Source: Eutreptiella sp. 'Long Island Sound 2002' (taxonomy: Eukaryota; Protista; Euglenida). From it: a stretch of 64,000 bases of DNA. The translations under genes were made by a program, and so were the position numbers. Below are positions 49,401 through 55,056 of the stretch, piece by piece (within the stretch, counting starts at the first letter, position 1; each line of letters begins with the position of its first letter). Where the stretch lies: assembly GCA_964036045.1 (NCBI GenBank), contig OZ038378.1:141174001-141238000 (forward strand), written 5' to 3'. A model generated the notes under the pieces. The model was not told the origin of the DNA and ran no database searches. It saw only the letters and a list, made by a program, of their open reading frames with translations.

Positions 49401-51300
49401 GCGCGACATTCCTTAATAAAAAAAATTCGGGTCTCCTGTACGACAGTTTGGAAAATAGATGTACACGACTGCTTGCTTGCTTGCTTGCTTGCTGCTGCTA
49501 AAATGTGTTGCTCACCCTGGACCCTAAGAAGCTTTGTGAAACCTCGACAGGGTAAACCCAGCTCGGTAATTAAATACCTAATTAATTATGGTCTGGTCCC
49601 TAAAAATACGATCCGAACGGAAGTGTTCGGTGGACACAGCATTCGTTGGACAGGGGGGGGGTGGATGTTTTTTTGACTGAAACAAAAGAAAGAAAACAAA
49701 TTCACTGAAAAACACCCTGCCTGTGACTCAGGCTGGCCAGCTGCTCCAAACGAGGGCCATGACGTCAGGTTTTGGGCTAGTCAGCATGATCCTGACCTCG
49801 CAGTTAGGGTTAGCGTAAGGAAACGAGGAGGAGGGGGGGGGGGGTTGATGGGCCATGATGTCAGGCTTTCAGATTCAGATCAGCAGCATGGCCCTGACCC
49901 CCTGCCAGGCGAGTCTTAAAACAGGCTGTGGAGGCGTAGGTTTACATTCTGGACCACAAAAGTGGCGGTCCGCAAGATGACGGTAACACGGGGTTGTCGT
50001 GCAGAGACCAGGCCGTACTTGCGCAGGGTACAGGCGACCAAAATGTGCTTCACCAAAGACTCCCACCTCGATGTGGAGCTGTGGGCGTGCCCAACCCATG
50101 CAGCATGTGCAGCACCAGGGGAGCACATGTTGTCCCAGTGTGCGCCTGTTTCGACAAATGGGGGAGGTGGGGTTGTCGGCGAGACAGGATAGAAAGCAGG
50201 GGCACTGTGTGGGGGGCCTCCTGCAACAAGTTGCGGTCTGGGGTTGTGGGTTGGGTCGTGGCGTTCTGTCTCCGGGCCCCAACCGTGCAGGGATCCGGAA
50301 AATGGCACAAAATGTTGTGGGGCACGGGGGGTGGAGATGATCAGAAGTGGTTGGAGATGGTTGTATGGGAGAGTGGGAGGTGGGAGAAATAAATGGAGAT
50401 TCGGACAGGAGCATCTCCAAAAGAACACAGCCTGTTCTGACAGACATTCAATATCATCGCTGCATTTACGCGTGCATATGCAGACACGGGGCAGGGCAGG
50501 GCAGGGCATGGGGTCAGACCACAAAGGCACGAGTCGAGGTTAGGGTTAATCACGAGGGCAAATCAGCCCAAAACATGCGGCCAAAAACAGAGGCATGGAT
50601 TTTCAGGCAGGGGCATGCGCTGTTCCACAGTCCCGGCGCCCATGGGACCCCGTGGGCCAGACAACGCTGCCGGGAACGACGGCTTTGTGTTGAAGGGAGG
50701 AGGGGAGAGGGGGGGGTCCGGGCAGGGTGCTGTGCATCCCATTTGCAATGGTAAAGCGCCTCCACACTTCTCCTGAGCCTCCTCCTGCTCCATTCTTGAC
50801 GCACACTCACCACCACCAGAAACAGCAGCACCAACAACAGCAGCACCAGTGCTATTACCACCACCAGTACCAGCACCAGCACCGGGACTATAAGCACCAC
50901 CACCATCAGTAAGCACGCGCAAGATGACGACAAGTGGTTTGCTTTCTGCCGCAAGCTTGGTGAGTGGTACGGGGACATATGAAGTTGAATTTCACAAGAA
51001 ACTTAACGCTGGATGCTGGGCACGAATCTCCTTGCACGAGACTTTTTCTACGGTACATCAACACAGCATACATGATGAGATATCTGGCGTTATGACTGTT
51101 GCTATTACTGTTGCAGCTACTGTGCTGTTGCTGTGACTGTTACTGGTATTCTTAATCTTACTGCTACTGCATCTGCTAGGGTCACCCGTACTGGTACTGT
51201 TGCTGTTGCTGATCTGTTCCTGTTGCCGTTACCGTTACTGTTGCTGCTAATGCTACCATCACTATCACCGAAAGCACTCACTGAAGATGCCGATCCAATG

Positions 51301-53382
51301 CTACGTATCCGCCAGCCGCTTCTTCGGGAGGGTACTGAGGCCATGGTACAGCCGCTTATCGGATCCCACCAAATTGGTCCTCAACTTCCGGCTGATGGTG
51401 GCCTGCCTCTCCGTCTTCGTCCCCCCTGCCACAGCAGCCCCAACAGAAGCCACGCTAGTTGATGTGGGGAGCAGCGCAAGGGTGTCCGGTGGAGGCCCAG
51501 CGCGCGGGCCCCTGGCGGCCGCCTCTTGGTCGTCCGCCCACTGGTAGTACTCCTGCAACTTGGAGCGGTAGGGCTGCACTCCATTCACGGTGCGGTCCAG
51601 CGTACTGGTCCCACTGTGCATGGAGGTCGCCTGCGTGACCTGCGAGTCGCCGATCCCAGGGCTCGGCATGACGAGCACCGAACCCGGGGCCAGGGGCGGT
51701 GCGGACATCCCGGGGGCCTGACTGCTGCGCGTGGGCTGGTGGCACGACAGGCACCGCACGGTCGCGGAAGACTCCACATCAGCCACCGGAATGGCCACGG
51801 GCTGCGTGGTCGGCTGAAGCCCCAACGATCGCCGGGCCCGCAAGCCTCGCAGTACCGTGGCCCAGTGGTCAGTCTGCTGCCGCACGTAAGTTTCATCTTT
51901 TGGTGCATCGGGTTCGAATCCTTGAAGCACGGCCCCGGGCGTGGTCAGGAGCTGGGCCAATAGTTCAGGTGCAGGGTATTGGTCCGCAAGCGGAGGCAGC
52001 TGCTCACCGGCCGGATCCCGCACCCCTTCCGGAGGATCGGTCGTCAGCGAGGCCTTCAGCCTCTGCATCGCGTCGGAGCTCATGATGCCGGACTCAAAGA
52101 GCTCCACCAGCGCCTCCCTGTCCAACGATCCATTGGCGACGCCCTCCTTCAAAGCCCCCACCGTGTCATTGAAGCGGGGCTCGTCCGCGGGGTACAGCCC
52201 GGAGCCCAGCGAGGGGTCGCCGCTGGCGGGCGACCCGGGCCGCTGCTGCCGGAACGAGTTGAACTCCGCCTTCCCGAGCTTCCGCCGATCCATCTTCTGA
52301 ACATACGTGTCCAGCTGCTCCACTCGCTCCACAAGGGCCTGCCACGCGTTGCTTTCAGGGGAGACCATGTCCTTAACCTTCCGGAACATGGTCTCCACGT
52401 CCGCCTGCAGCGTCTCCACATGGGCCTTCTCCGCCTTCTTCCCAAGGCCCAGGGACAGGCTTCGGTCCGTGCACGTCGTGACCTCCACGAGCTCCTGCAC
52501 CTTCCCCCAGTGCTCCTGCACTTGCTTCTGCAGCCCGGAGATGTCGATGGCCTTCTGCACTTTGTCCAGGTCCTCCGTCGTGGCCGTGAACAGCAGCGTC
52601 TGCTCCGCCCTCCCAATGCGCTTGTGGATGTGGTCCAGCTTCGCGCCCATGCGCTGCTTCTCGGTCTCGGCGCTGTCCGCAAGCGCTTTGAAGTGCTGTG
52701 TGCCGCTGACGTACGCTCGCTTGCGAGTCTCGGCCTCGGGCGTACACAACTCCATCAGCCTCTCCTTCTCGAAGCCCAAAGCGCACCACAGCGCGTCCGT
52801 GCACTGGGTAGTGTCGGTGAGTCGCTCGTTGTGCCTCTGCAGAGTCTCCGAGTGCTTGTCCAGCGTCGCCTCCAGCGGCTTGGGCAGGGCGTCAATCAGC
52901 GCCCGTAGGTCCTGGGACTCCCCCGTCAGTTTTGCTTCCAAGGCCTTGTCTGTTTGGGTGGAGTGCGTTTCCACGGACGTGATCCGCGCCTCGAGGCTGT
53001 TCTGCATTTCATCGGTGCGCTGTTCCAGGATCTTTATGGACTCGATGACGCGGATCGTCTTCTGGTCCTTCTGCGTCTTCATGTATTCCAGGTCCCGATA
53101 CGCGTCGTTCTGCAACTTGTCGATCTTGGCGTGGAGCTTTGTGCTGTGCTCATGCAGCTTTTGCTCAGTTTCCGTTCGCATTTGTCTGCTGTCCTGATTG
53201 AGCCCCGCGAGCTTCGTCTCGAGGGTCTCCAGGTTCCGGTTTGTCAACTGGATGGCCTTGGCCATGTTCTGCAGAACATTGTAGATCTGGATGCTGTTGA
53301 CGCTGACAGTGCACTGCACCAAATCATGGGGAGAAAAGTCCATAAAAGAGTCCGCATGGCCGGGCTCCACTGCGACCACCAT
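51301..53382 (-). CDS. Intronless 693-aa coiled-coil protein with C-terminal RCLSC and GSDKRLYHG motifs (QRICH2/DUF4795-like by motif recall); candidate retrogene
   Basis: 2082-nt uninterrupted ORF, ATG at 53382 with in-frame stops just upstream, TAG at 51301. GC3-rich codons and a heptad-like N-terminal half. Confidence 0.92.
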   Translation of the reverse strand: MVVAVEPGHADSFMDFSPHDLVQCTVSVNSIQIYNVLQNMAKAIQLTNRNLETLETKLAGLNQDSRQMRTETEQKLHEHSTKLHAKIDKLQNDAYRDLEYMKTQKDQKTIRVIESIKILEQRTDEMQNSLEARITSVETHSTQTDKALEAKLTGESQDLRALIDALPKPLEATLDKHSETLQRHNERLTDTTQCTDALWCALGFEKERLMELCTPEAETRKRAYVSGTQHFKALADSAETEKQRMGAKLDHIHKRIGRAEQTLLFTATTEDLDKVQKAIDISGLQKQVQEHWGKVQELVEVTTCTDRSLSLGLGKKAEKAHVETLQADVETMFRKVKDMVSPESNAWQALVERVEQLDTYVQKMDRRKLGKAEFNSFRQQRPGSPASGDPSLGSGLYPADEPRFNDTVGALKEGVANGSLDREALVELFESGIMSSDAMQRLKASLTTDPPEGVRDPAGEQLPPLADQYPAPELLAQLLTTPGAVLQGFEPDAPKDETYVRQQTDHWATVLRGLRARRSLGLQPTTQPVAIPVADVESSATVRCLSCHQPTRSSQAPGMSAPPLAPGSVLVMPSPGIGDSQVTQATSMHSGTSTLDRTVNGVQPYRSKLQEYYQWADDQEAAARGPRAGPPPDTLALLPTSTSVASVGAAVAGGTKTERQATISRKLRTNLVGSDKRLYHGLSTLPKKRLADT

Positions 53383-53435
53383 CGCAGAGAAGGAATCAAA
53401 GGCAGCCGAATCAGGGACAGACGCGGATGGCCATG

Positions 53436-53462
53436 CTGATAAAAAAAAAGAAACTCAGAAAG
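53436..53462 (-). other. Genomic relic of the euglenid spliced leader ending in a CAG acceptor
   Basis: The minus strand reads CTTTCTGAGTTTCTTTTTTTTTATCAG. Against the euglenid SL as I recall it, (A)CTTTCTGAGTGTCTATTTTTTTTCG, 20 of the first 22 positions are identical. It lies 53 nt upstream of the ATG. Confidence 0.75.
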
Positions 53463-54273: not shown

Positions 54274-55056
54274 CCATACATGGCATTAGCGTCCGTTTAA
54301 ACGGACACTTACGGACGCACCCAAAAATCAAAACGGACGCAAACGGACGCACCCCAAAACTGAAACGGACGCAAACGGACGCACCCAATCTGAAAAAACA
54401 TGCTCACATTGCTCACAACACACCACGTGCCCTCACAACTTCTACAATATGCAGGGAAAGTCAAAACAAAAAAAAGCAAACAAAAAATTTCCCATGGTGT
54501 CCCTGAACCTGCCAGTATCCTGCAGAATAGCCCCACAGGGGTTAGAACCCAGGACCTTCCCATTGCAGGGCACTGCTTTACCACTAGGGCAGGGCCCATC
54601 TCTGATATACTTCTGCCCAGGGGTGGTATTCATATTTGGTCCAATTTGGTTTTCATCCACTATTGGGTTCTCCAAAAAAAAACTGAGTATTTTGAGTATA
54701 GACACATGGGGTGAAAACCCAATTTTTCACCCTCTACTCAGTCAAGCAAAATTTCCTTAGGGCGCCTTCGGTGCCCATGGTCCGGCACTTCCGGGCCAAA
54801 ACCTGGCAGGGAGGGGGGGGGAGGGGAGTCGGCGTAAAGGGTCCGGTCCCGGCGCCCCCCCCGTGGGTGTCATGCTAGTCCAAGGCACTCTATGTGGCCG
54901 GCCATCATCCCTGCACAAACACACCCAAAAAGGAAAAACGGACGCAAACGGACGCACCCAAAAATCAAAACGGACGCGAACGGACGCACTCAGAACTCAA
55001 AACGGACGCAAACGGACGAGTACCCGTATCAAAACGGACGCTAATGCCATGTATGG
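54274..55056. mobile_element. Non-autonomous DNA transposon with perfect 25-bp TIRs and a 6-bp TSD
   Basis: TIR ccatacatggcattagcgtccgttt (25/25). cccgcc is duplicated at 54268-54273 and 55057-55062. Subterminal aaacggacgc repeats. Confidence 0.85.
54529..54597 (-). pseudogene. tRNA-Cys(GCA)-like degenerate copy inside the TIR element
   Basis: GGCCCTGCCCTAGTGGTAAAGCAGTGCCCTGCAATGGGAAGGTCCTGGGTTCTAACCCCTGTGGGGCT has A/B boxes, a CTGCAAT loop and a T arm. The anticodon stem is broken. Confidence 0.55.

Follow-up and report, generated by a model that had tools for sequence, protein, structure and literature searches.

A decayed spliced leader ahead of an intronless gene in the euglenid Eutreptiella points to a spliced-leader-tagged retrogene

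Results

Sequence and Position of the Spliced-Leader Relic

A stretch of 64,000 nucleotides of the genome of Eutreptiella sp. 'Long Island Sound 2002' (GenBank assembly GCA_964036045.1, contig OZ038378.1, positions 141,174,001 to 141,238,000; hereafter the window, to which positions without a contig name refer) carries on its minus strand an intronless, single-copy open reading frame (ORF) of 2082 nt including the stop codon (51301-53382), encoding 693 amino acids. Upstream of its start codon (53382-53380), and on the same strand, lies a decayed copy of the spliced leader (SL) that euglenid mRNAs receive by trans-splicing. This relic, CTTTCTGAGTTTCTTTTTTTTTATCAG, occupies the minus strand at 53462-53436, equivalent to positions -80 to -54 of the coding strand relative to the ATG. 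The 53 nt between relic and ATG (53435-53383), read as 5' untranslated region (UTR), contain no AG dinucleotide and include a 7-codon upstream ORF (ATG at 53434, TGA at 53413-53411). An earlier note on this DNA, made from its sequence alone, had described an SL-like sequence 53 nt ahead of a 2082-nt intronless ORF; direct reading of the window sequence and the ORF call bore out both its sequence and its position.

Searches of the whole genome (2.28 Gb), with the identical letters in reverse order as a control, were used to trace the relic to its source. The exact SL 25-mer, CTTTCTGAGTGTCTATTTTTTTTCG, was found in the genome and is followed by GTAT in SL-RNA genes. The leader given in the earlier note was the species' own SL, and its count of 20 matching bases among the first 22 was correct, rising to 21 of 23 when the comparison is extended. 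The two substitutions fall at position 11 (G>T) and position 15 (A>T), and the 3' end of the relic reads ATCAG where the SL has CG. With up to two mismatches, the SL 23-mer yielded 9,148 genome matches (4,603 + 4,545) and the reversed control none; with up to three, the 25-mer yielded 8,806, again against none. For a 14-mer SL core, the chance expectation was 0.05 per window. Since the reversed control gave no match genome-wide, a compositional look-alike was ruled out, and since the exact variant seen in the relic occurs only once in the whole genome, a variant family of SL-RNA genes was excluded as its source. These results demonstrated that the relic derives from the SL, with a match far beyond chance. 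A second, more decayed SL-like stretch, CTTGCTGAGTGTCTACTTGTTGGTTTTTTCTG, was present after a G-run at 1208-1240 on the minus strand, with no obvious ORF behind it.

Similarity between the locus and SL-RNA genes was limited to the SL exon, which was all that a local alignment of the two spanned. The relic is followed by ATCAGCATGG, with no GT after the leader. Scores of its downstream and upstream flanks against an SL-RNA gene were 9 and 9, at the level of shuffled sequences (mean approximately 8, maxima 16 and 13), and neither SL intron similarity nor the conserved upstream block of SL genes was found at these flanks. Identity of the relic as an SL-RNA gene was therefore rejected, for want of a 5' splice site and of intron or promoter homology. 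In Euglena gracilis, ordinary outrons carry C-rich, not T-rich, tracts before CAG (PMC11170887), so the tract of nine T in the relic was attributed to inheritance from the SL and not to a routine acceptor motif.

The Gene and Its Family

No interruption was found in the ORF, and contigs from RNA libraries were colinear with it, with no joints reported inside. An exhaustive HMMER search recovered four relatives of the encoded protein: a protein of 610 aa from Eutreptiella gymnastica (27% identical), a transcript product of 630 aa from E. gracilis (P0003; 25% identical), a protein of 504 aa from the prokinetoplastid Apiculatamorpha spiralis, and a fragment of 181 aa. The window protein aligned end to end, from its first residues to the C-terminus, with the euglenid and kinetoplastid homologues, and the C-terminal motifs RCLSC..P, NYF.W, and RTNLVGSD.R.Y.GL were common to the family. 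This end-to-end alignment and the conserved C-terminal motifs indicated that the single exon holds the complete protein. Judged by its sequence, the gene is a full-length member of a Euglenozoa-restricted family of coiled-coil/helical proteins. Searches of Pfam, PDB profiles, and Atlas returned coiled-coil or apolipoprotein-like compositional matches only, which were rejected as indications of function, as was a sub-threshold lead to DUF4795/QRICH2 (scored 0.87).

The copy is apparently functional and under selection, a reading that combines simulation, conserved motifs, and codon bias. In simulations of neutral evolution, an ORF of this length stayed open in approximately 0.3% of cases at 8.7% divergence and in approximately 48% at 1%; the divergence of the relic itself is 2 of 23 bases (8.7%), with a 95% interval of 1-28%. 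GC content at third codon positions was 0.82 in the ORF, as compared to an overall GC content of 0.565 in the window.

Genome matches to the Eutreptiella gymnastica and E. gracilis proteins of the family located a paralogue (C10:13625477-13670869, minus strand), which served as intron comparator. It consists of at least nine coding blocks of 87-189 nt spread over 45 kb, with spacings of 214 to 20,646 nt, and the window gene is continuous across every one of the block boundaries. Where alignable, the paralogue and the window protein were about 25-35% identical. A tree of six sequences was poorly supported and placed the window protein on by far the longest branch (approximately 2 changes per site); with branching unsupported and the window branch very long, its use for dating the duplication was rejected. 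The transcript-derived E. gracilis relative had no near-identical locus in the assembly, its best exon match being 71% identical.

Retroposition of Spliced-Leader RNA Across the Genome

The genome contained 1,146 occurrences of a conserved 32-nt segment from the intron of SL-RNA genes, clustered in arrays. As compared to the approximately 9,150 SL matches, this number indicated that some 8,000 SL copies are not SL-RNA genes. Among the first thirty loci with an exact SL, 8 were SL-RNA genes (GTAT and conserved intron, with a conserved upstream block), while in the remaining 22 the exact SL was fused to unrelated, non-intron sequence. An ORF of at least 200 aa began within 400 nt after the SL in 16 of these 22 fused loci, as compared to 5/22 and 1/22 in flank controls, and 5'-UTR lengths at fresh relic loci ranged from 3 to 80 nt. 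The SL-RNA genes themselves lie in large arrays with irregular, kilobase-scale spacing (C1:29-458 kb, C13:25-404 kb, and C3:164.0-164.6 Mb); the C3 array showed mixed gene orientation and a one-base intron variant.

Several of the SL relic loci proved to be repeat families, two of which, when extended, were long interspersed nuclear elements (LINEs). An exact SL forms the start of these elements and precedes ORF1 and an ORF2 with Exo_endo_phos and RVT_1 domains. Full-length examples with both ORF2 domains are L054:54-6224 (G000:C1:13316800-13326799) and L055:69-6094 (G000:C1:11649500-11659499). Upstream flanks varied between LINE copies, which indicated that the SL belongs to the copied RNA and not to the target site. 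ORF1 of the L054 and L052 elements encoded a 2OG-Fe(II) oxygenase (AlkB-like) domain, an unusual cargo for a LINE ORF1.

A gene for a C-type lectin (Pfam Lectin_C) was represented by a multi-exon parent and two intronless copies. The parent (G000:C5:27471844-27490565, plus strand) comprises at least 12 pieces over 18.7 kb that are 74-96% identical per piece, with one duplicate, weaker match at 56%. One intronless copy is intact, and its ATG lies 16 nt after an exact SL (C1:835319-836620, minus strand; L009); the other (C1:8185467-8186739, minus strand) is broken by two TGA stops and a break in the reading frame.

Exact tandem SL relics were found 90 times in the genome and not once in the control, with up to three relics in a row (examples: L060, G000:C1:55396075-55396122; L057, C1:1042703-1042764). 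In 57 of the 90, TGTCTATTTTTTTTCG follows immediately after a full SL. Such direct TGTCTA joints indicated that a genomic relic had been trans-spliced again at its internal AG and the product copied back into the genome once more. A further 27 retain the AG (..TTTTCG/AGTGTCT), a form not accounted for by a canonical 3' splice site; many of these are not independent events, because one downstream repeat family is common to them. The other 6 tandem relics have longer spacers. Taken together, the data strongly supported that retroposition of SL-bearing RNA and re-splicing operate genome-wide.

Many SL relics are directly preceded by runs of C or G (10-20 nt upstream; L011-L013, L020, L023, L028, L029, L060, L064, and L068). 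These runs may represent untemplated bases added by reverse transcription at a capped 5' end, or a target-site preference. The window relic has no such run.

Transcription and Candidate Trans-Splice Acceptors

Read data at the locus consisted of contigs from two DNA-like runs and two RNA libraries. In the DNA-like runs, one contig spanned 49544-53925, with very high-copy repeats at both ends. The RNA libraries yielded low-depth contigs over the ORF (depth 2-8), which continued in patches downstream to approximately 49631, and one of them yielded a depth-2 contig at 53480-53736. The downstream stretch (49631-51300, minus strand) may be 3' UTR, or may reflect carry-over of DNA. Some non-repeat bins near the gene had coverage in the DNA runs and none in the RNA libraries; these bins argue against plain DNA carry-over, itself still a possible source of the contigs. 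RNA depth was 6-7 in the bin 53243-53439 and 1.7 and 0 in the next. The 5'-most contigs over the ORF ended at 53427 and 53412, the nearer one 8 nt short of 53435; these ends fit a mature 5' end near 53435. One contig of 488 nt from RNA run X2 (52947-53412) included 22 letters that were not placed on the locus.

Between the start of the relic and the ATG, only two AG dinucleotides could serve as a trans-splice acceptor. The first candidate is the CAG after the tract of nine T (53436-53438, minus strand; exon start 53435), above which, at approximately 53440, RNA depth drops; the second is the AG inside the SL (CTGAG; 53454-53455, minus strand; exon start 53453), a position reused in the direct tandem relics of this genome. 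Chances are about even that a fresh SL is added at the CAG, in which case the mRNA would begin with the upstream ORF whose ATG lies at 53434. Addition at the SL-internal AG is a distinctly weaker prospect, on a par with the remaining options taken together, namely that the acceptor lies upstream of the relic, that the relic acts in a promoter-like way, or that no fresh SL is added at all. A promoter-like role of relict SLs has been proposed for dinoflagellates (PMC6050394). The site that is visibly reused in tandem relics is the SL-internal AG (CTGAG/TGTCT), not the end of the T-tract. The downstream acceptor is nonetheless compatible with the tandem data, because its use would leave no tandem trace. 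The T-tract and CAG of the relic, proposed in the earlier note as a new acceptor, are the likelier of the two candidates. Another relic, on C6, that ends in TTTCAG (L034) was considered as support for such a conversion into an acceptor and rejected, being a mutated copy of a repeated, SL-headed family.

Surroundings of the Gene

Scans of 49-56 kb for tRNAs and against Rfam gave no matches, and no repeats resembling long terminal repeats or terminal inverted repeats were found bracketing the gene. The earlier note had described two neighbouring genes with exons of 99-348 nt and introns of up to 8.6 kb. Pfam was blank for ten other long ORFs of the window, and a codon-usage scan gave no other clear exons, so that these scans yielded no confirmation of that description. 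An element of approximately 783 bp at 54274-55056, in a very high-copy region, resembled a miniature inverted-repeat transposable element; its terminal inverted repeats of 25 nt are perfect, and AAACGGACGC repeats occur subterminally. Downstream of the gene there are short interstitial CCCTAA repeats of telomere-like type (49805-49822 and 50540-50552, minus strand).

Discussion

Origin of the Window Gene

The interpretation of the window gene as an SL-tagged retrogene is well supported. As in the relict-SL retrogenes of dinoflagellates, a leader sequence lies at the expected position and on the expected strand, matches the SL above chance, and is not part of an SL-RNA gene. As in processed retrogenes generally, the gene is intronless as compared to an intron-rich family member (a paralogue, not the parent), and the genome contains a source of reverse transcriptase. 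The proposal of an SL-retrogene in the earlier note accordingly stands as regards an SL-derived relic in sense orientation at 5'-UTR distance, an intronless gene in an intron-rich family, and a genome that retroposes such RNAs; a poly(A) tail, a target-site duplication, and a parent, which would complete it, were not found.

Probably, the gene was copied by LINE machinery from its own mRNA and the parent was subsequently lost. The relic is far younger than the divergence implied by 25% identity to the paralogues, which argues that retroposition copied an already distinct gene whose own locus has since gone. In the proposed sequence of events, the mature mRNA of the gene, trans-spliced and free of introns, would have been reverse-transcribed and inserted at the present site, most likely by the endonuclease and reverse transcriptase of the genome's own LINEs, as for the lectin copies. 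The copy would have retained the SL ahead of its 53-nt 5' UTR and have stayed under selection, and later loss of the original intron-containing locus would have left it as the sole copy. The relic would then have decayed by two substitutions, loss of its first base, and alteration of its 3' end. Today, the locus would be transcribed from upstream and its RNA given a fresh SL, with the exon starting at 53435 or 53453. The template, the agency of LINEs, the loss of the parent, and the acceptor now in use are all inferred steps of this scheme.

Several observations weigh against this interpretation. The earlier note had suggested a search for an intron-containing parent, but when the whole genome was searched in six frames, the 693-aa protein matched only its own locus, with no parent or parent remnant. 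The nearest paralogues are merely 25-27% identical, a divergence far older than the relic; on sequence comparison, the C10 paralogue attests introns in the family, not in the window gene's own ancestor, and is not the parent. No poly(A) relic and no A-rich 20-mer was found downstream of the gene. A search for direct repeats of the bases that abut the relic gave no credible target-site duplication; the only 9-mer that repeats them lies 2.7 kb past the stop codon, with no adjacent A-run. The relic itself is without the initial A and the terminal CG of the SL. Expression evidence at the locus consists of low-depth RNA contigs, none of which spans the relic and in none of which an SL junction is visible. 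Word-based searches of protein collections with the full protein and with residues 1-250 returned the gene itself and no transcript-derived protein of it, an exact-protein look-up returned one other genomic contig only, and look-ups of the three homologues yielded no contigs. Finally, the 1-28% interval on relic divergence is wide enough to include a young copy, for which an open ORF would prove little.

The best-surviving alternative is replacement in place, in which the gene's own trans-spliced mRNA would have given rise to a cDNA that recombined with the intron-containing locus of origin; all introns would have been lost at once, the SL would have been carried in at a non-homologous 5' junction, and the gene would never have moved. 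The single-copy state of the gene, with neither parent nor parental debris in the genome, and the missing poly(A) relic and target-site duplication all agree with such an event, and intron loss mediated by reverse transcriptase is documented in the sister group Kinetoplastea (PMC11613528). However, the 5' junction would call for end-joining, because upstream of the SL a cDNA offers no homology, and lectin copies and LINEs, which are the clear examples in this genome, are insertions at dispersed sites. Replacement in place is therefore considered unlikely.

Somewhat less probable still is a chance juxtaposition, in which the relic is the stump of an unrelated retro-insertion, of a LINE or of another mRNA copy, that landed upstream of an independently intronless gene. 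SL relics are abundant (roughly one per 280 kb), the decayed stretch at 1208-1240 of the same window has no obvious gene behind it, and no 3' hallmarks link the relic and the ORF. However, approximately 8,000 copies outside SL-RNA genes, spread over 2.28 Gb, would place a relic in sense orientation within 100 nt of the ATG of only about 2 in every 10,000 genes. When truncated, LINE-type copies lose their 5' end and not their 3' end, which makes a stump of SL alone unexpected. Moreover, the spacing of 53 nt falls within the 5'-UTR range of fresh relic loci, and the window gene is without every intron of its paralogue.

A reading of the stretch as an orphon, a pseudogene of SL-RNA, or as an SL-like but ordinary pyrimidine-rich acceptor is hardly credible: some of the approximately 1,146 SL-RNA genes are dispersed and the stretch does close with a T-tract and CAG in the manner of a 3' splice site, but it shows no GT and no similarity to the SL intron or the conserved upstream region, reversed-control matches are nil genome-wide, and ordinary outron tracts in E. 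gracilis are C-rich.

Implications for Euglenid Genomes

Retention of SLs at the head of LINEs and genes raises the tentative idea, held here with less confidence than the retrogene origin of the window gene, that euglenids run a continuous, genome-wide cycle from trans-spliced mRNA via cDNA to new gene. SL-capped LINEs would drive this cycle, and the copied leader would provide a ready-made acceptor or, possibly, a promoter-like element. If so, the internal AG and T-tract of the leader would make retrocopies expressible upon insertion wherever read-through transcription arrives. Such a cycle would explain why retrogenes survive so often, why some, such as the window gene, have been orphaned and stand in place of their parents, and why euglenid genes have lost introns, as well as part of the 2-Gb genome size. 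The window locus adds a case of its own, a retrogene that is old and lacks a parent, yet is still intact and, as far as its sequence tells, functional.

No cleaner tag than the SL relict is known for genes that arose from RNA, and in the accessible literature such relicts have been used in dinoflagellates and Perkinsus only. The euglenid adds an independent lineage, the second, whose retroposition events can be counted and dated with no recourse to intron loss or poly(A) tails, and points to gene turnover mediated by reverse transcriptase as a force behind intron loss and genome expansion in euglenids. For annotation, these data carry a warning: the SL carried by a transcript may itself be genome-encoded, and mapping of outrons by means of the SL can mislead.

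Comparison With Known Systems

SL-tagged retrogenes as a kind are known from dinoflagellates, and the euglenid is a new lineage for such genes. A search of the literature outside subscription journals found no euglenid report, all papers on relict SLs being on dinoflagellates, and the draft-genome and chromosome-level papers on E. gracilis make no mention of retroposition of SL relics. Within that literature, the supposition of the earlier note that such recycling was undescribed in euglenids holds.

As reviewed in PMC6050394, the DinoSL-relict retrogenes of dinoflagellates were described as 'recycled processed cDNAs' by Slamovits and Keeling (2008), in which the DinoSL or its relict is encoded 50-100 nt ahead of a protein-coding gene's start codon; further papers have dealt with such retrogenes (PMC5585692; PMC12014239). 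A relict ahead of the start codon, tandem relicts that record repeated cycles, and re-trans-splicing are common to those genes and to this euglenid genome. Transcripts of dinoflagellate retrocopies receive a fresh SL and retrocopy survival is high; at the window locus, a fresh SL would be the corresponding feature. The lineages and their SLs differ, and the long T-tract of the euglenid SL could act as a polypyrimidine tract. In recycled euglenid relics, the cut falls at the SL-internal AG and leaves 10 of the 26 SL bases (leading A counted) on its 5' side, and SL-headed LINEs are visible here as the likely engine.

Classical LINE-mediated retrogenes of mammals, Drosophila, and plants likewise combine an intronless, dispersed copy with an intron-bearing family and active LINEs that encode an apurinic-type endonuclease and reverse transcriptase (APE/RT). 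They also show a poly(A) tail, target-site duplications, and an identifiable parent, none of which was found at the window locus, whereas the 5' SL tag of the window gene has no counterpart in them. SL-RNA genes and dispersed orphons share the leader sequence with the relic, but have GTAT and a conserved intron after it and a conserved block before it, neither of which the window relic has. SLACS, CZAR, and CRE of trypanosomatids are also euglenozoan non-LTR elements that are associated with SL sequence. In contrast to the elements and genes described here, which are headed by complete SLs at unrelated sites, they target SL-RNA genes, whose SL exon is split by the insertion. The occurrence of complete SLs at unrelated sites with varied upstream flanks indicates that, in Eutreptiella, the SL was acquired by trans-splicing of the RNA and not by choice of target.

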